Below, one piece after another: positions 1-10,295 of a stretch of 64,000 bases of DNA. Positions within the stretch are counted from its first letter, which is position 1. The number at the start of each line of letters is the position of its first letter. The notes under the pieces are model-generated. The model saw only the letters and a list, made by a program, of their open reading frames with translations. It searched no databases and was not told where the DNA came from. Made by a program: the position numbers and the translations under genes. The DNA is from Phaeosaccion multiseriatum (lineage: Eukaryota > Protista > Ochrophyta, other classes): assembly GCA_965112735.1 (NCBI GenBank), contig OZ218954.1:2294001-2358000 (forward strand), in the 5' to 3' direction.

Positions 1-832
1 GGAGGGACATCGCAACACGACAATTGTCGCGAACATCTTCACAGCTAGCTGGTTCCGCAATTTAATTGTTCAGCGGCAGAAAACGAAGTGAGTGTAAATC
101 AACAGGAGACGTAGTGCTGTCTTGCGGTACCCATGCCTGGGGGGCATGCTAGCGGGACAGAGCAGGACGGGGATGGGGACGATGCGTTCCCTGATATCTC
201 TAGTCCAGGAGTAGGTGGAGGGGATCCACCTTCTCAACAAGACATGTTTATGCTAATGCAGCAGCAGCAGCAGCAGATAGCAAACCTGACCAACTTATTG
301 GCCAAATTAGACACAGGATCAGCAGCGGGAAGCTCTGTTGTGTCAGGGGCAGGAGGCCCCGGAGGTGCGTCAAGCAGTGGCGGCACCATAGCGGGAGGGG
401 GAGGCAGCACGGGGGGCAGCAGCGGTAGCAGCAGCTCTCTGATTTGTTTGAGCTACAAGTCAAAGGTGCAAACCTTCTCTTCCGAGCTGAAAGAAGGAAC
501 AGTTGTAGAGACAGCCGTTCCTGACAGGACAGCCGTTCCTGACAATGAAAGCGAATCGGAGCGGCAGTTAGCTGCTTACGCGAAAGAACTATTGATGACC
601 GGTTTTGGTGGGGCGAGATGCCCCACTCGGTGAAAGTGGGTATTTTTAGTACCCAATTTTTTTAAAAGTGGGTATTTTTAGTACAGTACCCAATATGGAC
701 CAGTAGCGCCCCTCCCCCCCCCCCTCCTTTTTGGTGTATCTCTCCCCTCCTCCTCCAAAATATACTACGCTATGATATGACGATTTAATGGTATTACCAC
801 GATAACAATGGTATTCATATTTACAGACACAC

Positions 833-1021
833 TTAGTGTCCGTCCTCAATCATGCATGGCATACAGTAGTAGTCAAAATCGCCTTCCGCAAAACCCTTGC
901 TGTCGCAAAACTCGACGGTGCACATGTGGTGCACGAGGTTTCCACACGCTCTTTCGGATGGGCAGAGGAACAGCTTGACTTGCGAGGGCTTAGTACAGCC
1001 ATACGAGCATGTGAAGGCCAT
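833..1021 (-). CDS. PHD/RING-like Cys/His zinc finger, probably the true C-terminus of the Crypton protein
   Basis: C-x3-C...C-x5-C-x4-H-x2-C...C-x2-C (CSYGC..LCPSERAC..HHMC..YYCMPC). This frame is open back to the G6/C3/A7 run at 1151-1166. Confidence 0.7.
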   Translation of the reverse strand: MAFTCSYGCTKPSQVKLFLCPSERACGNLVHHMCTVEFCDSKGFAEGDFDYYCMPCMIEDGH

Positions 1022-1032
1022 GTCTCCCTCTC

Positions 1033-1216
1033 TCAAGCCGCCCAACGACGGCGCTGCTGACGCGGCAGCAGCGGCAGTAGCGGCCGCAGCGGCCGCATCA
1101 GAGGCAGCAGCAGAAGCAGCATCAGAAGCAGTACCAGTACCAGTACGCTGTTTTTTTGGGCCCCCCTTCCCCCACCCCTTCCTCCTCGTCCTCCTCCGGC
1201 TCCGCCTCCTCCTGTT

Positions 1217-1250
<34 letters not shown>

Positions 1251-3892
1251 TGCTGCTGCCACCTCCCTCCTCGTCGTCCTCTGCACCGCTATCACCTCCA
1301 TCCCCCTCCTTCGACTCGTCTGCACCAGTGCCACTTTCCTTCGCCCTCGCCCGCTTCGCCCGTTTTTTCGCGTCCGCCTGCTGCGCGCTCCATAAATTAT
1401 ACACGGTGGTCCACACCAGCTGATTGAAGCGGCGCTTGTGAGAATCAGAACGAGACTTGATGTCAAAGGCGTCTTTGACTGCGTCAAACATGCTTCGCGC
1501 TTCTTCAAGCGTCGGCTTGTCCTTCCAGAGCCCCTTTTCTTTCGCCGCGGATTCAATCGCACCCATCAAACAGCAAAATTTTGACATCCTTCGCTTCTCC
1601 GCCCTCCCCTGCACGTCTGCTGTCGTGAATTCTCGAAGGCGAGGAGTGCCTGTCATCCAAGCATCCCAAGCAGCGCGCACAGTGAAGCTAGGGACCTCAA
1701 AGTGCTCGGGAAGGGTATGCCACCGGCCGTTGTAGAGATACAGAGGTGGCTGATCTGCACCTGCACAAGAAGAAGAAGAGGGCGGGGCGCTGCTCGAACC
1801 CTCACCAAGGCCCAGAGTGCCTGCCTGGTGAGCCGCGAGAAGGTCGCTGAGCCCACTCTTAGAAAAGGCTGCGTCGAGGGTCGTCTGCAGGGCCCTGCTC
1901 ACACCCAGACTGGTGACAGTGCCAGAGGCCTGTGCATTCTCCTCCAGAACGTCACGGATCAGCGTCTCCAAGTCGACCTTGATCGTCTGGCCCAACACCT
2001 CAAGCTTGCCGCCTAGAGAGGCCACGCTGTCCGCCACGACTTGGAATTGCCTCAGCTGCACGACGTGGGGAGGAATCCCGGTTGCAGAAATCTCGTCCGT
2101 CTCGTCCGGATACTTCAGCACGACATGCTCTGAAAGGTCCGCCAGCAACCTTTGATCTCGGAAGAGCTGTGTCGTGAAAAGAGGGTGATTCTCCTGAAGA
2201 GTGCTGCGCAGAAAGCCGGCGTGGTACACCACACTGGCAAGACAGAATTCAGCCACCTTCCTCAATCTCAGCGGCACGTCCCTGAAGCAGCTCACAATGG
2301 CTCCCGCGAGCACGTCTTCAATGCCCTCCTTCGCTGTGCCGTCCACCTTGAGGCGCTGAAAAAAGGGAGGAAGCAATGCAAACTCCTTCGCTGAGATGTT
2401 CGCCCCGGAGGCAGCCCGGCCCACATACTGATCTGCTGCATTGATGGGGTTGAAGTAGATGCCCTGGACGCCGGGAAGAGACCATCCCATTCGAAGTTGC
2501 ACAGCAATTGGGTTGGGAGCAGCGGACGAGCCGCTTGTGACGTGCGAGGCAGCGCCCTTGCGCCCAGAATGAGTGCCGAGGTCCTCTGGAGTCAGCCCCA
2601 TGCCTTCCAAAATGGACGAGTTCGCCGCCGCCGTACGTCTGAGGAAGCCGCAATACCTATCGTACTGATTGTTGCCAGCGAACAGCGCGTTCTTCTCAAA
2701 ACCAAAGCTCAGGAGGTAAACACCAAGCGCGAGGACGGGGCAGATCTCCGGCATGATTGGATTCGCGTAGACGTGGCGAGGATGTCGGGCCTTCTCTCCC
2801 AGCTGGTCGCCCTTTTGCTTCCCAAAATAGACGCAGAGCGCGTCCCCCTTCCACTCGAGATGATCGAGACAAATCTCCACACAGTTGGTGGCGCGGCACA
2901 TCAGATTCCAGGAGAGAACGAGGAAGGGGTGGCCAAAGGCGCCCTGTCTGTGCCCGTTCTCACAGACTGCCGAGCTCAGCATTGCTGCGATGTACACAAG
3001 CGAAGGAAACAGTGGCAACCAAAGACGGCGTCAGGGCTAGGAAGTGAGTGGGGGGCAGTCAATGCATCAGCCACTTGTCTCCACCCACTCCACTAGTTTC
3101 CACTGTCCACTGACTCCACACAGCTGGGAATTTACCTTTGGCAAGAGCGCGGTAGAGAGCGAACGGCATGGGAGCCTTCCCTTCTCTGACTTCGACATTT
3201 CCCTCCTGCTTCTCTCCTGCGATCGTCCTCTTCAGCCCCTTGGTGAGCGTCGCAAGGTCGCTTTGCAATTTGCGGTGCTGCTCCTCCTGATGGTAGTCTC
3301 TGTACAGATTGAAGAGTGCAGAGCGTTTCGACTGTGCACCGGCCTTGGATAAGCCCTTCGGCCCCTTCTTGACTTCAAGCAGCCACCCGAAGAACGCGTC
3401 GGCTGTCAGCAGATGGAACAGCAAAGGGTGCGGCGCCCGAGGTGCTTGGATCAAGTGTGCCTTCACCCGCTTCGTCCACTGCGCCTCAGCCTTCTTCTTG
3501 GCCTTTGCTTGGGCTTTCGCTGCTCTCGACACCTCAGCCGGCGTCTGCTGTGCCGCTGCAGTGGCACCACCCGCTCCGCCAGGTGCGGCGGCTGCTGCGG
3601 CTGCTCCTGCTCTCCTCTGTGCTTCCTCCTCTTCCCCATCTTCCCCGTCTTCCTCCTCTTCCCCCTCCGGTGGAGCAAATGCTGTCCTGAAGTCAGGGTC
3701 CAGAAGCTCCGGGTGCTTGCGGAAGAGGTATCGGATCAGCATCGTGGAGGCGCATGCATATCCACTTCTCGAGCGTGGGGCGATGGTGTTGTTTCGGGGG
3801 TTCTGAATCTGCTGCTGCTCTGCAGTAAGCGGTGCTTCTTCCCCCTCTGCTGCTGGTGCTTCCGGAACCGTAGCAACAGCGACGTCAGCCAT
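1033..3892 (-). CDS. Crypton tyrosine recombinase with GCR1_C-like C-terminal domain (exons 3892-3136, 2984-1033; ~902 aa, or ~969 aa ending at 833 if the -1 frame at ~1151-1157 is used)
   Basis: GT-AG intron 3135-2985 joins ORFs 3059..3892 and 1033..3018 in frame. Catalytic motifs are present: WNLMCRA (R), KQKGDQ (K), GTHSGRKG (HxxR), MGW, QGIY (Y). PEHFEVPSFTVRAAWDAWMTG resembles the GCR1_C domain of CryptonS/F proteins. Confidence 0.9.
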
Positions 3893-4759
3893 GGTATACT
3901 CTGTTCTCCTGCAAATTCACGTGGGAGATGCCCCTCCCACCACTGGCATCAGCTGTTACAGCCGGGTATCGTCCGCGCAGCCGCTGCTCCTCTTACATAG
4001 CTGCACTGTGCAAATATGCTGATGCTGTGAATGAAATAAACTCCACGTGGGGAGGGGGGGGAGAATGCCCCACAACCAAAAAATATTGGATAAAAAACTT
4101 GAAAAACGAGCATTTATGGCCCATAAAATATCCAAAACAATTATTTCGTGGGGCAGGTGCCCCACTTCACGGTACTATTAGACATACGGACTACAGAGAA
4201 CTGGAGCTATTGACAGAGGAATTGGCAGCCTGGACAGAGTTGGAGAAGGCACAATCTCTCATGAAGAAAGTGAGGGAGCGCTATATAGAAGTAGAGAACT
4301 ATGGAAACGTCGAAGACTGTAGTGAAATAGCGGCCTACTGCAGTGAAATAGCGGCCTTTGGAAAGAAGGTAGCGGCTTGGGAGGACTTCGCGAGGCGGAG
4401 GTCTGAGAAGGCTTCATGGGCGGTCGAGGCCGGAGCGAGAAGCTCGAAGGAAGCGCAGATAGCAAATACTAGTGACCCTGGTAGAACCAAGATGTCTGAC
4501 AGGCAATATGGTAGGGTACTGGGGGCGGATGGTGGAACGGATGTGTTTGCTGACACACGTAATACCTGTCCCGGTGATGAGGGTGCATCCCACATCGAAG
4601 GCTGCGTTAGTAGTCTTAGGCTGGGCATACGGAAAAATGGTATGCCGGAGCCAGAAGAAGATAGGACGGATGGTGGAACGGAAGTGTCGGTCGATATTCG
4701 TAGAATCAGTCCTGATAGTGAGGGAGGGCCCCTTACTAATGAAGAGAGAGGGTTGCGTA

Positions 4760-5030
4760 CAGAGCCGGAAGAGGCAAAGCAGCAACTAGCGTGTGCAGAG
4801 CCGGAGGAGGCAGAGCAGCAACTAGAGCGTGCAGAGCCGGAGGAGGCAGAGCAGCAACTAGAGCGTGCAGAGCCGGAGGAGGCAAAGCAGCAACTAGCGT
4901 GTGCAGAGCCGGAGGAGGCAGAGCAGCAACTAGAGCGTGCAGAGCCGGAGGAGGCAAAGCAGCAACTAGCGTGTGCAGAGCCGGAGGAGGCAGAGCAGCA
5001 ATCAGTGCGTGCAGAGTCTGAGCAGACAGA
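4760..5030 (+). repeat. 42-bp coding tandem repeat (~6 copies; AEPEEAEQQLERAE-type)
   Basis: Repeated GCAGAGCCGGAGGAGGCAGAGCAGCAACTAGAGCGT units. Confidence 0.9.
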
Positions 5031-5399
5031 GCCGCAACTGTCTGAGGAGCAACACGTAGAGCCACGGCAGCGAGAGCCGGGGCAAACAGAGTCGATGGCA
5101 GCAGAGGCCGTCCAGACATACCCAGGAGTAGAAAACTCGGTAGGGGTAGGAGAAAGCCGTGGGCTTGTGGGGACTGACCTGAGTCCCACGGAGAGAGAGA
5201 GAATTGGGGAAAGCACGGAGCAGCTGGCGCAGAAGCAGACAGAAGTAGTGCAAGCAGACCGGCACGTAGAGGCAGTGGCACCGACGAGAAAATCTACCGT
5301 GGCTCAGCAGGTAGCATTGGACACTCCGCTGCCGGGCGGGAGAGTATGTGCAGCGTCGTGCAGGGACGGACCCACTCCCGAGAGGGGCAAAGACAGCAG

Positions 5400-5700
5400 A
5401 CAGGCAGAGCCAGCCGCACAGCGGGAGCGGCAGCAGGCAGAGCCAGCAGAGACACAGAGGTGTCCGACAACAGAGCAGCGGCAGGAAGAGCCGGCAGCTC
5501 AGAGAGAGACGAGGCAGGCAGAGCCAGCCGCACAGCGGGAGCGGCAGCAGGCAGAGCCAGCAGAGACACAGAGGTGTCCGACAACAGAGCAGCGGCAGGA
5601 AGAGCCGGCAGCTCAGAGAGAGACGAGGCAGGCAGAGCCAGCCGCACAGCGGGAGCGACAGCAGGCAGAGCCAGCAGAGACACAGATGTGTCCAACAGCA
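5400..5700 (+). repeat. 120-bp coding tandem repeat (~2.5 copies)
   Basis: RQAEPAAQRERQQAEPAETQRCPTTEQRQEEPAAQRET repeated. Confidence 0.9.
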
Positions 5701-6467
5701 GCACAGCAGCAGCAGAGGGCAGAGCCACAGCCGGCAGAGCCACAGCCGGCAGAGCCCCAGCAGGCAGTGTGTCGGACAGAGCGGCAGACAGCGCCGCAAG
5801 AGCGCTGCAGAGAGTGCAGCGAAGGCAGCGTACAGCACAACAGAGAGCAGAGCAGCCAGATCAGGGCAGAGCAGAGCAAGGCAGAGCAGAGCAAGGCAGA
5901 GCAGAACCTGGAACCTATGCAGGCCAGTCGTTATTGGATGTATGAGACAGCCAGGGAGGGCGACAGAGGCGCCCAGGAGACGGACTGGGATGCGGTACCT
6001 ACAGGGAAGTATGGGAGAGGTCAGCGTGGTACGAGGGTTCGGTGCGAGCAAGATCTGTATGGGAGAGGTCAACGCGGAAGCAGGACCAAGGGTGAGCAAG
6101 TTGTGCACACAAGAGGGGGACTGGATTTTGAGTCTTCCTGTAGAGGGGTATATGGGTGCTACGTTGGAGTGGCATGAAGTCTTGGGTGGACATGTGTATG
6201 GGTCACCAGCTAAGACTTGTGAGCAATTGTGGAAGCGCCTAGAGGCAAGTGGCATTGAAGACGAACAGGCTGACTGTGTGATAGCCGGGTGGGTTCGTGG
6301 GTGATGGCCGCTAGCATGGTTGTGAGCGACATAGCATTTGCAAGGAGGAATTGACTCGGCTTATGAAGAAGCCGGGCGGGGCCTGAGCATGGCGAAGCAT
6401 AGAAGCGCTTGTGTGAGTACCCGGGGGTACATTTGGAGAAGCGTTTGAAGGAAAGGGGGGACTCAAT

Positions 6468-6795
6468 TTGGAGGCGTTAGCCGAAGTGAAATGGGCTGCT
6501 GACCTGGACAGTCGGAGCAGTGTTGAGGGACTTGACATTTGCTGGAGGGACGTGTAGTCCAAGCAGCGTGGCAGCAGACTGAGTGAAGGAGTTTCCATTG
6601 TGAAGGACATGAGTTTCTGTGTTCGGAGGCTGATGGGACAGGCACTGTTTTGTATGAAGACGATGAAGGGTGCATTCAGCTGGTCAAGGGGAACGAGAGC
6701 AGTATCTGAACACGGAGGAGCAGCTTGGGGACATCATGACCAAGGCTTTGACTCCACAGGTGCACAAGTACCTGGTTTCGAAGATGTTGAAATAG
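6468..6795 (+). pseudogene. Copia-type RNase H remnant
   Basis: Matches to copia motifs xDWAGDLDxRxS, TVxYEDNxGxI and TEEQLADIxTKAL, in broken frames, ending in TAG at 6793-6795 before the PPT and LTR. Confidence 0.8.
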
Positions 6796-6948
6796 TTTGG
6801 GTTTTAGTTTAGCTTGGGTTAGTCTTGGGATAGCTTGGGTTAGTGATTAGTGATTAGGTACTGAGGTAGCGAGGTTTTACATGCGTTTTACTTGCTATCT
6901 TAGATGTGTTGACTGTTTAGGAGAGAGTGAGTTTCGATCCAAGGGGGG

Positions 6949-7131
6949 TGTTGTGATATGATCATTATTGGGGTCTGTGGGATGCCCAATATTGATAACG
7001 TCCACACTTGGGATCTTCAACTCTGAGGCTCTGGGCCTCGTACTACGTTTATGGTTCTGTTAAAGGGCAATATATATTAGTTGACACACACAACAGCTTA
7101 CGTATCATAGTGCGGGAGGGACATCGCAACA
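6949..7131 (+). repeat. 3' LTR (183 bp) of the copia-like element
   Basis: TG...CA termini with imperfect inverted ends (TGTTGTGAT / ATCGCAACA), PPT immediately upstream, last 17 nt identical to window positions 1-17. Confidence 0.85.
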
Positions 7132-7470
7132 AGGGGTGGGGGAGGGGGGGAGCGAGGGAGGGAGCGAGGGAGGGAGCGAGGGAGCGAGGGAGGGAGAGAG
7201 AGAGGGAGAGAGAGAGGGAGAGAGGGAGGGAGGGAGGGAGGGAGGGAGGGAGAGAGGGAGGAAGAGAGGGAGGGAGGGAGGGAGGGAGGGAGGGAGGGAG
7301 AGAGGGAGGAAGAGAGGGAGGGAGCGAGGGAGGGAGGGAGCGAGGGAGCGAGGGAGCGAGGGAGCGAGGGAGCGAGGGAGCGAGGGAGGGAGGGGGCGAG
7401 GGAGCGAGGGAGGGAGGGAGGGAGGGAGCGAGGGAGGGAGGGGGCGAGGGAGCGAGGGAGGGAGGGAGGA
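7132..7470 (+). repeat. Purine-rich (GGAG/GAGCGAGG)n simple repeat
   Basis: Directly visible G/A-rich tract abutting the 3' LTR. Confidence 0.95.
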
Positions 7471-7492
7471 AGGGGCTGACGACGCGGGCCGG

Positions 7493-7579
7493 ATGGAGGA
7501 GTTGGTAGAGTTGCGTTATAGAGCCAAGCTACTTCGTCGAGACCTGCAGCAACTCGGGGTAAGTACTCTTAAGAGTAGC

Positions 7580-7617
<38 letters not shown>

Positions 7618-8519
7618 CAGGAATAGCTGCAGAGCAGCAACAGTAGTAGCAGCAGTAGTAGCAGCAGCAGGAGCAGCAGCAGCAGTAGTACCTTGACACC
7701 TTGTCATCTCAAAGAACTCCTTTGGCTTGTGGCTTGTTTCCCCTCTTGGCCGACATCAGGTCAAGGAATGGCGGAGCCGCCGCAAGAAGAAGAAGGAGCT
7801 GTCGGACGTGGACGCCAAGATCAGGAAGCTGGACCGAGCCATGGCAGGAGAGCATGGCCAGGACAGAAAGTGGCGCGGTCTCCGTGTGGAGGACCTTCCT
7901 CAGCGCTCTGGCCTCCACGCCAACACCAAGTACGTGGATGTGCTGAATCCCCTGGAGGGGCAGACGGCAGAGTTCCGGCGCGAGGTCAGGGAGTATCTTG
8001 GAAAGCTAACCCCCGAGCAAAGATGGGGAGGGGCCGACCCCGGAGTGCGGACGTTCCTGTCCATCTGGTGTGCCCACACTGGGCGCTTCTTCAGGGTGGG
8101 TCACGGCTTCTCCGCCTCCATGCGGCCGCTGCAGAGGAGGATAGCGAAGCTGGAGAGCCAGGTGTGGCAGGCAGCGCAGGTGAGGAGGATGCGTGCCTCG
8201 CCCAAGTCTCTTGTCGTGGCTGATGTCACTTTCTAATCCCTCCCTCCCTCCCTCCGCCCGCGCACAGAGTGGACAGGACACGCGGGCTCTTCGCCTGGAG
8301 GCGGCCAAGATGCGGGCGCTCTTGCACCACAAGACGCTCGTCCTCCACACGATAGCCATACGGCTCATCGTGGCGAACTTCACGCACTTTGTGTTGCCTC
8401 CTGTCCGAGCCCAGGCATGGTCCAGCCGGCGGGGCCGCCAGATCTCGGGGCTGCCGAGGGATATGGGGAGGGACATGGACGCCCTCTCCATGGGTCTATT
8501 CCGCCAACGGCTCAAGACG
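7493..8519 (+). pseudogene. Fanzor / IS607-TnpB-like RNA-guided nuclease gene, spliced and truncated (exons 7493-7558, 7760-8179, 8268-8519)
   Basis: Phase-0 GT-AG introns join three ORFs. RuvC-I motif GADPGVRTFLSIW, bridge-helix-like LQRRIAKLESQ, then LHTIAIRLIVANFTHFVLPP...MDALSMGLFRQRLK, matching the Fanzor pattern DPGVRTF...LH...L..NF..I.LP...M...S...F.QRL. No convincing RuvC-II Glu, Zn finger or RuvC-III exon was found. Confidence 0.75.
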
Positions 8520-10295
8520 GTGCGTGTGTGCGTCTGTTGCTTGTTGTTGGCTTGGTGTTGGGCTGGCTGGCTGGCTGGTGTTGACTTAATGTATAACGTA
8601 TACGTTGATCGGCATTCTCCCCTCCCTACAGTTGTACTCCCTCCCAACCCCCCCCCAAGTTGTCCTTGCACTCCTCCTCCGTCCTTGTGCAGAGTATGTA
8701 CACATAAATCCCGTACGTACTCCTCCTGCGGCCGAGTCGAGCGAAGTGAGTGAGTCCTCCGCCTCTCCCCCTCGAGGACCGGGGCACCCAGCCACTGCAG
8801 TCATCAGTCATCAGCCTCCGCGATCATCTCGTCAGTGATGGCCTTCACCGACTTACCGCACAGCACGTGACTGTGGGAAACAGAAACGCAACAACACTTG
8901 TGGGTTAGTCTTGTATCAGCCATGAACTCGTTGCTGTACCTTCGATACGTACGTAACTTTCGAGATGGCTGACCAGGCGCTCAACGCACACCCCCACACA
9001 TAGCACACATAGTCATGATCATCGAGCGGGAAACGTCCCTGACAAGCCACGCACGCACTTCTTGGTTCTTGACGACGACACCCGGGGGGTGGGTGTCGAC
9101 GATGCCGACGACGGCTCCTTTCGCCGCGGCGAGCCTGCAGCAGACGAGCAGCACGAGCGGGTGGGAGGCAGGCACACACAGCAGCAGCAGACAAGATGCG
9201 TGTGCAGTGTAGCTAAAAGGAAGCCCCAGCCAGAGGTTTCTGGAGCTCCAGCACAAGTAAGATCCAAAGGGGGGGTGGGGGTTTGCAGGGTGGTGCTCAG
9301 GCTGTGTGATGCTTGACACGACCTGCGGAAAGCGCTGAACACCAACACCTGTCTCCCTCCTCGAGGGCGCTGGACTGCCCCCCAGCAGACGGGAGAGAGG
9401 GGTTGAGGCAAGGGATGCTCGACCTGCGCGAACGACACAGAGCAGGTCAGGAATGAGTGAGCAGCATGGACAATCGAGGACTATGAACTCGTCCCATGTG
9501 TGATTGCTTGCCTTCACCTTCACAGGAGCGTCAAGCCGTTGAGCACTCCGGCGTCTCGCTGCTGCGGCGAGAGGATACCCGCCGAAAGAACCTCTCCTGT
9601 TGAGAGGGACACGGTGGCGGCCTCACCTGCAAGGGCTGCAGGCCAATAAGCTTTTTAGATAAGAGTTTCGGCACATGGCAAAACAACACAGAACCGAAAG
9701 TGAGAGTTCACTTTGGAAAAAGGACCCAGCCACACCTGGACACATCGCCCCGATCAGTCCATCGGCGGTCAGAACGAAGCCGTTGAGTTGATGCATGGAG
9801 GGCTGCGAGGCTGTGTGTGAGGAGGGCGGGGAGGGCACACATTCATATTCCTCCTCCGTCTCTAAACTGTGCGAGTACAACTCAATCTCCTCGCGCAGCC
9901 CTCACCTCCCGCCGCGCCCGATGAAAAGCGCACCATACTGTCCCGCACTCTCTCCACGCCGGGACCGCTCTTCCGAGAGCCGCAGCGGTGCCTCTCCCCC
10001 CCAGCCCCGGAGTCGGATCCGCCTCGGATGCCACTGTTGGCAACAACTTTGCCCACGATGGAGCGCGTGGTGAAGGCGGCGCTTAAGCGGGAGAACGACG
10101 AATGGACACCGTGTCGTAGCAGGCTTCCGGCTGAAAGCATGGTTCCGCTTGTATGTAGTCTTGTTCATCGTGAGGGGAGAGGGGGGTCCGATTTCCCCGC
10201 GCAAAGATCAAAAGTAAAGATGCACAAGAAGTGGAAACTGAAACTAGACCCTACATAGATCCCCACCCCGCGCTGTGATCGCGTACTGTGGCCTC

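Follow-up and report, generated by a model that had tools for sequence, protein, structure and literature searches.

A young, probably non-functional Fanzor relic in Phaeosaccion multiseriatum, left from a 21-kb unit divided by a retroelement and a rearrangement

In a 64-kb stretch of contig OZ218954.1 of the ochrophyte alga Phaeosaccion multiseriatum (positions 2,294,001 to 2,358,000, here called the window), three exons between 7493 and 8519 join into a frame with the RuvC motifs of Fanzor nucleases, immediately downstream of a retroelement. Is this a gene in use, a nuclease-dead derivative kept in frame or a relic, and where is the rest of the protein? An earlier sequence-only reading of the window had left the last two possibilities side by side. 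The evidence described here makes it highly probable that window 7132–8581 comes from one copy of a unit of ~21 kb, of which it is the penultimate 1.45 kb; this copy arose recently and was then wrecked, so that what stands in the window is a non-functional relic. The relic was thus retained; the idea of a dead derivative maintained in frame was not, since the intactness of this copy is uninformative about selection.

The exons of the window and their copies in the genome

Positions without a contig name refer to the window; C5 is the contig sampled by the window, and C1, C4, C6, C7, C9 and C14 are others of the assembly. The fragment consists of the following parts:

7493–7558, plus strand: internal coding exon (MEELVELRYRAKLLRRDLQQLG), 22 codons, followed by GTAAGT; 100% identical in the C1 and C7 copies.
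7559–7759, plus strand: intron 1 as predicted from the sequence (GTAAGT..AG), with trinucleotide repeats inside.
7760–8179, plus strand: exon 2, 140 codons, basic linker and RuvC-I, then GTGAGG; matched by paralogues.
8180–8267, plus strand: intron 2 (GTGAGG..AG); a contig of the public run X5 skips exactly these 88 nt.
8268–8519, plus strand: exon 3, 84 codons, helix and RuvC-II strand HFVLPP, C-terminal end FRQRLKT; protein 100% identical in three sister copies.
8520–8581, plus strand: first 62 nt of the last intron, donor GTGCGT; no sister-copy homology past 8581.

Joined together, the three exons give 246 codons with zero stops and every junction in phase 0, and the motifs GADPGVRTFLSIW, LQRRIAKLESQ, LHTIAIRLIVANFTHFVLPP and MDALSMGLFRQRLK were all recovered, so that the arrangement of three fragments around GT-AG introns is as the sequence-only reading had described it. 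The codon of the catalytic Asp (GAC, 8036–8038) lies within GADPGVRTF, and the Pro codon CCT at 8397–8399 (HFVLPP) occupies the position of the canonical TnpB Glu. A search of the alga's own 67-Mb genome returned eight paralogous matches to the exons (E = 5e-92 to 3e-20), with 99, 95, 91, 80, 48, 48, 44 and 51% identity in exon 2; DPGVR and HFVLPP are invariant even in paralogues of 43–47% identity. These matches and the two invariant motifs show that the exon structure is not due to chance.

At the DNA level, homology to the four closest copies is confined to window 7132–8581. The copies on C1 (4.63 Mb), C7 (3.65 Mb) and C1 (4.34 Mb) resume ~100 nt later with an exon containing ..LLEPSEAFTTKTCTACG..CPTC..LLRDPCAAR; this downstream exon of the sister copies reads EPSEAFTTKTCTACG...CPTC...LLRD, and the sisters also have upstream coding sequence. 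The search for full-length copies that the sequence-only reading had proposed therefore succeeded: intact sisters exist, and C1:4630979–4652018 was taken as the reference. The window piece differs from C1 by a single substitution (at 7839) across 1,089 non-repeat nt, the introns having no substitution at all, and the C5 copy as a whole differs from the C1 copy by 0.2–0.3% substitution. Frame and splice sites are intact because the copy is this young, and no selection is needed to account for them.

The more distant paralogues form two groups, C5:385k together with C4:916k, and C6:1.52 Mb, which are alike in layout: an N-terminal open frame of 470–690 codons is followed by RuvC-I, the HFVLPP exon and a zinc-finger exon. 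In the C5:385k paralogue (47–48% identity in exon 2) the N-terminal domain runs unbroken into RuvC-I, and the MEELVELRY exon of the window (7493–7558) resembles an internal sequence, MADELGKLRAQ, of the long N-terminal open reading frame (ORF) of the C6 paralogue. The ATG at 7493 is probably not a true start. A stop-containing pseudogene of the family lies at C7:3650205.

The displaced tail and front of the window copy

Neither end of the protein is encoded in the window. A tblastn search over the 64 kb found no last exon (Glu, zinc finger, RuvC-III), in agreement with the sequence-only reading, and likewise no upstream paralogue coding sequence anywhere in the window. As read from its sequence, the window codes only for RuvC-I and the Pro-bearing RuvC-II strand, with one of the three catalytic residues, and an active site would be impossible.

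To locate the tail, the genome was searched with the 983 nt lying past the break in the C1 copy. Besides the intact copies there was one match, C5:1756591–1757495 on the minus strand, to query bases 1–905, and it contains the remainder of the last intron, the exon that supplies Glu, zinc finger and RuvC-III, and the unit's right end. The junction has these parts:

8581/8582: rearrangement breakpoint; the continuation of 905 nt runs from C5:1757495 down to 1756591 on the minus strand.
Window at the break: ...GGCTGGTGT/TGACTT.
Sister copies at the same place: ...GGCTGGTGT/CGCTGAG.
Start of the tail: /CGCTGAG.

The tail starts at the exact base due after window 8581, with no overlap and no loss; 545,086 bp separate the two halves, which share a chromosome but not an orientation. 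Over its 905 nt the tail has 3 substitutions relative to C1, and its terminus ...GGTATAAAAATGCGCC is that of the other copies. Its acceptor is in phase 0, which gives the joined reading ...FRQRLKT / VIASPS...SEAFTTKTC (exon VIASPSCSLVLLEPSEAFTTKTCTACGAFNECVGAKKVWTCPTCKATLLRDPCAARTITLFGL..). The exon that the sequence-only reading had looked for in vain was not lost by decay but has been displaced by 545 kb.

It could be supposed that the window piece and the tail at C5:1.757 Mb are remains of two unrelated, independently truncated copies whose ends coincide by chance, and fragments of the family do occur elsewhere, for example the pseudogene at C7:3650205 and ~17 solitary right ends. Such a coincidence would be exceedingly improbable, as the breakpoints match exactly, with neither gap nor overlap, within a unit of 21 kb, and the two pieces share a chromosome, have opposite orientations and both differ from C1 by 0.2–0.3%.

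Both new flanks (8582–9800, and the sequence beside the tail) are unique in the genome and without microhomology, which argues for a non-homologous two-break event. An inversion mediated by repeats was also considered and is ruled out by the uniqueness of both flanks. One inversion of ~545 kb with a break in the last intron would be the simplest account of the two halves. Before it, the unit would have lain uninterrupted on the minus strand at ~1.757 Mb, with ...TCCATCCTCCCA beside TGACTTAATG; the inversion would have cut the last intron after 8581, and the last exon, with its Glu, C4 finger and RuvC-III Asp, would have stayed behind at C5:1756591–1757495 together with the unit's right end.

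To see whether the break is real, contigs of four public runs were placed on window 7700–10200 (a start chosen to avoid long simple repeats). Three runs of one sample (X1–X3) are continuous through intron 2 and are therefore DNA. Their unitigs begin at 8552–8559, that is 23–30 nt left of the break, and extend to 10200, and a second path leaves 8581 into CGCTGAGACTGAG, the continuation of the sister copies; DNA depth over the gene is ~2.9x that of the flank, as expected from three near-identical copies. In X5, from an independent study, a contig of 1,159 nt spans 8529–9687 and reaches 53 nt left of the break. The 8581/8582 junction exists in the raw data of two studies. An assembly artefact, in which the C5 copy is continuous in reality and a 545-kb block was mis-oriented or mis-joined, could also yield halves that fit to the base if the mis-join fell inside a repeat; the break does lie within a sequence present in three near-identical copies, where errors are easily made, and the reads cover one of the two junctions. 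The sequence right of 8581 and that beside the tail are unique, however, and the X1–X3 unitigs as well as the independent X5 contig cross 8581/8582, so that we judge this explanation quite unlikely.

On the other side of the exons, the window opens inside the retroelement, whose long terminal repeats (LTRs) and surroundings are as follows:

1–17, plus strand: final 17 nt of the 5' LTR; the whole LTR is C5:2293829–2294017 and begins 171 nt ahead of the window.
18–6942, plus strand: interior of the LTR element, a multi-copy repeat with a low-complexity ORF at 3928–6177.
About 600–4173: putative Crypton-like element nested in the LTR element, with recombinase frames on the minus strand.
6943–7131, plus strand: 3' LTR, a 189-nt direct repeat match.
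7132–7475, plus strand: (GGGAGGGAGCGAGG)n tract (repeat family D1), part of the Fanzor-bearing unit and site of the LTR insertion; sister homology resumes at 7132.

The element measures 7,303 nt (C5:2293829 to window 7131), and its two 189-nt LTRs (TG..CA) are 98.9% identical, with 2 differing positions. The family is multi-copy, with members of roughly 4 kb at C4:482404–486458, C14:2358312–2362923 and C9:1325864–1329521. The LTR element reported immediately upstream of the exons is thus present, whereas the proposal that its insertion cut off the 5' part of the gene does not hold: the front persists beyond the 7.3-kb insert. The stretch C5:2272671–2293555 is collinear with C1:4632935–4651327 at 98.5% identity, with 38 substitutions in ~17.5 kb, and the 10 kb ahead of the window (locus L024) are 98.4–98.5% identical to the C1 copy up to C5:2293555. 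The (GGGAGGGAGCGAGG)n tract, which can be read through without a stop into the next exon's frame (ORF 7136–7696), has its other half before the insert, at roughly C5:2293300–2293828 (also L024:9300–9833). In a first-look search with window 7132–7475 and L024:9300–9833, this minisatellite was widespread in the genome (1,603 candidates).

The stretch of C5 that is homologous to the N-terminal domain of the paralogues, L024 8617–9048, also lies upstream of the insert. The sequence-only reading had found the segment before RuvC-I unlike a WED domain. The segment is a linker, and whatever serves as WED/REC would be encoded on the far side of the insert; that no WED-like domain precedes RuvC-I in the window is explained by the N-terminal homologue sitting beyond the LTR element. 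Within the front, a 1-nt deletion at C5:2292231 (L024:8231) splits a frame of 653 codons, intact in C1 and C7, into two overlapping frames.

Taken together, the C5 copy would be a very recent insertion of the 21-kb unit that suffered three lesions: the 7,303-nt LTR element with its nested Crypton-like element would have entered the G/A-rich tract before the exon at 7493, the non-homologous inversion would have separated the last exon from the rest, and the 1-nt deletion would have split the 653-codon upstream frame.

The transcript data bear on whether the remaining frame is nevertheless used. X5 is labelled 'DNA?' but is RNA-like, its contigs totalling 34 Mb against a genome of 67 Mb and its depth over exons being 15–20x that of the flank. 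One contig omits 8180–8267 (GT..AG), and another, covering 8287–8520, continues into CCATCGCCTCTCCC.., the last exon of the C1/C7 type. This exon starts with GCCATC in the C1/C7 type and in the X5 contig and with GTTATC in the C5 tail; at 7839 the X5 exon-2 contig has A, the C1 allele, where the window has C. The X5 contigs therefore carry the variants of the sisters, and they validate the splice sites and show transcription and splicing of the intact sisters, but do not show that the window copy is expressed. For the RNA junctions that the sequence-only reading had singled out, both intron 2 and the donor GTGCGT at 8520 proved to be used in these sister-copy contigs, the latter being real in that a contig is spliced at 8519/8520 into the sister-type last exon.

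A spliced gene on the minus strand (window 8800–9700) converges on the relic; its last exon (..SHVLCGKSVKAITDEMIAEADD, stop) ends near 8800, and its 3' end abuts the relic. This 3' end may account for the X5 contig across the break.

The most direct rival to a relic is a truncated protein, domesticated or regulatory, in which the 246-codon frame, possibly extended to the stop at 8751–8753, provides RuvC-I only and is kept by selection. The intact frame and splice sites and the ATG at 7493 would be in its favour, as would the RNA-like contigs over the exons and across the break. Against these, a copy with 1 substitution in 1,089 nt relative to an intact sister, and 0 in the introns, can be intact with no selection at all; the exon contigs carry sister-copy variants, and the break-crossing contig is explicable by the convergent gene that stops near 8800. 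Moreover, the same truncated form occurs at no other locus in the genome, the MEELVELRY exon resembles internal sequence of the C6 paralogue, and the N-terminal domain of C5:385k is unbroken into RuvC-I. We consider selection for such a protein very unlikely and retain the relic.

Assignment to the Fanzor family

In TnpB and Fanzor proteins, N-terminal WED and REC domains bind the guide RNA and recognise the target-adjacent motif, and the guide RNA is encoded between the 3' part of the gene and the element's right end. In Fanzors and TnpB2 the canonical RuvC-II Glu is replaced by Pro or Gly and an alternative Glu lies tens of residues downstream, and mutation of D324 or E467 abolishes cleavage by the Fanzor ApmFz2 (PMC10530073). 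TnpB and Fanzor proteins share the signature D-X(125,275)-[TS]-[TS]-X-X-[C4 zinc finger]-X(5,50)-RD of Bao and Jurka (2013), and Fanzors of stramenopiles are already known (PMC3627910). In the family described here, the RuvC-I Asp, expected in a strand of the form hydrophobic-G-x-D-x-G, is that of GADPGVRTF and is invariant in all paralogues, and the Pro of HFVLPP at the canonical RuvC-II position, noted already in the sequence-only reading, is as in Fanzors (PMC10530073). The alternative Glu is absent from the window and lies in the tail (SEAFTTKTC), 56 residues further along once window and tail are joined. The C4 zinc finger is absent from the 64-kb window, as is the RuvC-III Asp; the tail and the sister copies have both, the Asp within LLRDPCAAR. 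Accordingly, the complete signature appears only when window and tail are joined (149 from D to TT, then 5 to RD, with the zinc finger read as TT-KT-C..C...C..C), and the window alone does not contain it.

Among domain models, the threshold of Pfam PF07282 (Cas12f1-like TNB / OrfB_Zn_ribbon) was passed by the last exon in both the C5:385k and the C6 paralogue (30.3 and 34.8 bits, cut-off 26.3), and the sisters that are 91–99% identical in exon 2 run on into the same type of exon. Among NCBIfam models, IS607_TnpB came closest to this last exon of the paralogues, a weak match of ~20 bits against a family cut-off of 350. In an exhaustive HMMER search, a profile of exons 2 and 3 matched 5 proteins in 1.84 billion, including two of Chrysoparadoxa australica (2.6e-16 and 5.7e-9) and a metagenomic protein of 317 aa, P0003, which passes PF07282 and contains GAADPGVR, FFLPP, SEAYTT, C..C...C..C and RDVAAAR in this order in one chain. 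The C. australica proteins (P0001 and P0002; NCBI CAM9952658.1 and CAM9771463.1) are unnamed and are the nearest database relatives of the window exons; the Fanzor lineage therefore extends to at least one further ochrophyte alga and has no annotation there. A homologue search with residues 300–674 of the C5:385k paralogue ORF found none, one with P0003 found one further relative only, and the N-terminal profile of the paralogues (the 470–520 residues before RuvC-I, presumed WED/REC) had no Pfam or PDB match.

A family profile (A6) was built from the proteins found with HMMER, the window exons and the tail exon. Against PDB it matched 9b0l_P, the chain of ApmFz2, at E = 3.7e-20 (profile 86–281 on residues 317–516), with the family Asp on D324, the Glu of the tail exon on E467 and RD on the RD of 9B0L. 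The next matches were Cas12m, TranC and TnpB chains, and there was no Fanzor1 chain at E<=1, which places the family nearer to Fanzor2. A profile of the N-terminal half of RuvC that included distant homologues also placed 9b0l first and in the correct register, at E = 0.035 only. In an Atlas language-model search with window exon 2, OrfB_IS605 was the family of 83 among the 100 nearest named clusters (the best scoring 0.95), and the exon-2+3 frame of the C6 paralogue gave OrfB_IS605 again. Judged by these matches, the family is a divergent, intron-containing Fanzor on the Fanzor2/IS607-TnpB side, as had been proposed. From solved and assayed Fanzors, its intact protein would be predicted to be an omega-RNA-guided RuvC DNA endonuclease.

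The likeness might still be a chance one, the DPG and helix motifs belonging to an orphan protein encoded by a repeat, and the window exons by themselves indeed had no significant Pfam, NCBIfam or PDB sequence match (PDB searches with exon-2, exon-3 and exon-2+3 profiles were all negative). Yet near-identical sisters run collinearly into a PF07282-type exon, the family profile falls on 9B0L with the catalytic residues in register, and 9B0L also tops the list for the N-terminal half; we regard the chance that this is not a Fanzor as practically negligible.

The closest solved relative from RuvC-I to RuvC-III is ApmFz2 (mimivirus L79, Acanthamoeba polyphaga; 9B0L; PMC11832414, PMC10530073). The two share a non-acidic RuvC-II residue (Gly in ApmFz2, Pro here), the Glu before [TS][TS]-x-x-Cys, the C4 finger and RD. 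Unlike ApmFz2, an intron-less viral gene for 520 aa, the family is nuclear and spliced, has at least 500 residues before RuvC-I with no detectable similarity to the N-terminal, REC and WED domains of ApmFz2, and stands at the end of a 21-kb inverted-repeat unit; the window copy furthermore lacks everything past the RuvC-II strand. With IS607-type TnpB it has in common the relocated Glu and a nuclease gene that adjoins the right end of the element. Fanzor2 proteins cluster with IS607-type TnpB, in elements with a serine recombinase and without terminal inverted repeats (PMC3627910). The affinity of the family to this subgroup is seen in its sequence (best PDB and NCBIfam matches) and does not extend to the element type: 23-nt inverted repeats are present, unlike in IS607 elements (PMC3627910), and no recombinase domain was found in the ten largest upstream frames. 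A eukaryotic host, multiple copies, introns, a eukaryotic DNA transposon as carrier and Pro/Gly at RuvC-II are also features of Fanzor1 (SpuFz1, 8GKH; the Chlamydomonas reinhardtii Fanzor in Helitron2; PMC10530073, PMC3627910), but unlike the carrier of the C. reinhardtii Fanzor, the carrier here is by its ends not a Helitron.

Several points weigh against the reading of the locus as a wrecked Fanzor copy. Given the silence of the databases on the window exons themselves, their assignment leans on collinear paralogues and on a profile that includes the C-terminal exon. The check by structure prediction gave less than that by profile: the AlphaFold model of P0003 (from a 19-row alignment) was poor, with a predicted local distance difference test (pLDDT) score of 64, and although Foldseek placed 9B0L at the top, the match was weak (E = 0.011, probability 0.99, template-modelling score 0.27), so that the predicted structure is consistent with a Fanzor and no more. 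Of the checks that the sequence-only reading had asked of profiles and models, the family profile thus fell on 9B0L, the window exons alone found no match, and the model matched weakly. Expression of the window copy is inseparable from that of its sisters, and one X5 contig crosses the break. The frameshift at C5:2292231 counts as a lesion only if the long frame codes, as it probably does. Finally, of the two inversion junctions, 8581/8582 and C5:1757495/1757496, read support covers the first, and the reciprocal junction, made in silico by joining the outer flanks, is intergenic and interrupts no gene, so that the inversion gains no confirmation from it.

The carrier unit and what the relic means

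The C1 reference unit comprises 21,040 bp (loci L017, L027 and L028) and has imperfect inverted repeats of 23 nt as its boundaries, 5' GGCGCACTTTTATAGTGTCGACC and 3' GGTCGACGGTATAAAAATGCGCC (GGCGCAyTTTTATAnnGTCGACC). The Fanzor module occupies its last ~2.5 kb, adjoining the right end, a position like that in TnpB and Fanzor elements. Further copies, with different flanks, are C7:3652817–3672369, the interrupted one made up of C5:2272671–2293555 and window 7132–8581, whose start lies 675 nt in from the left end, and an older one at C1:4.34 Mb. The C1 reference, C7 and C5 copies are 97–99.8% alike, and the unit has therefore been mobile recently. No target-site duplication was seen at the unit, and in its ten largest upstream frames Pfam recognised no domain, neither a transposase nor a serine recombinase nor any other. 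Immediately upstream of the full C7 copy, in tandem with it, ~1.4 kb of left end is joined to a solitary right end (C7:3672401–3674599, L033); this partial copy resembles a non-autonomous derivative that arose by internal deletion.

The last ~80 nt of the right end are 95–100% identical across the three Fanzor lineages, whose exon 2 sequences are 43–48% identical, and the end always stops with ...ATGCGCC (...TTCCAAATTTCTTTTTCTTCTCCCTTTTCCGGGCCGGCGGTCGACGGTATAAAAATGCGCC). It recurs alone at ~17 further loci, there too ending at GCGCC, with 24 matches in all. When the 3' regions of the three lineages were aligned, they were gappy outside the last ~90 nt, and the last 300 nt of the unit folded no better than shuffles (z = +0.53). 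The ~80-nt right end might serve as a transposon end bound by a transposase, as a guide-RNA scaffold, or in both ways. The sites referred to are the following:

Right end: C5:1756593–1756672, L021:3841–3920, L022:4391–4469, L023:4193–4273, L033:3102–3165 and the ~17 further loci.
TGTAG/GTGAG(T) sites in the three Fanzor lineages: L017:3755–3790 (minus strand), L021 at ~3630–3650, L023 at ~4110–4130.

At the latter sites, the long last frame of each of the three lineages ends with ..TGTAG and is directly followed by GTGAG(T). A stop abutting a consensus donor suggests either that a 3' intron has been conserved or that there is an alternative last exon.

It is conceivable, and we offer it tentatively as something rather doubtful at present, that the 21-kb unit is a new kind of giant Fanzor2-bearing DNA transposon and that its right end is perhaps a shared guide-RNA or homing module; if this were true, the 0.2–0.3% divergence of the C5 copy would document current mobility. 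The right end, with any guide RNA that it may encode, lies outside the window.

For the interpretation of the locus itself, it would be wrong to take the tidy frame in the window for a sign of domestication or for a nuclease-dead Fanzor. What looks like a 'hidden gene' in a single window can be the middle of a larger unit split by a retroelement and an inversion, and the giant upstream gene, the window fragment and the orphan zinc-finger tail would here be one broken copy. The relic also marks what is probably a recent inversion in this alga, mapped to the base, and it would date this rearrangement. The intact, transcribed C1 sister, together with the exact ends of the unit, provides a reference for tests of the guide RNA, the target-adjacent motif (TAM) and the activity of this Fanzor family.

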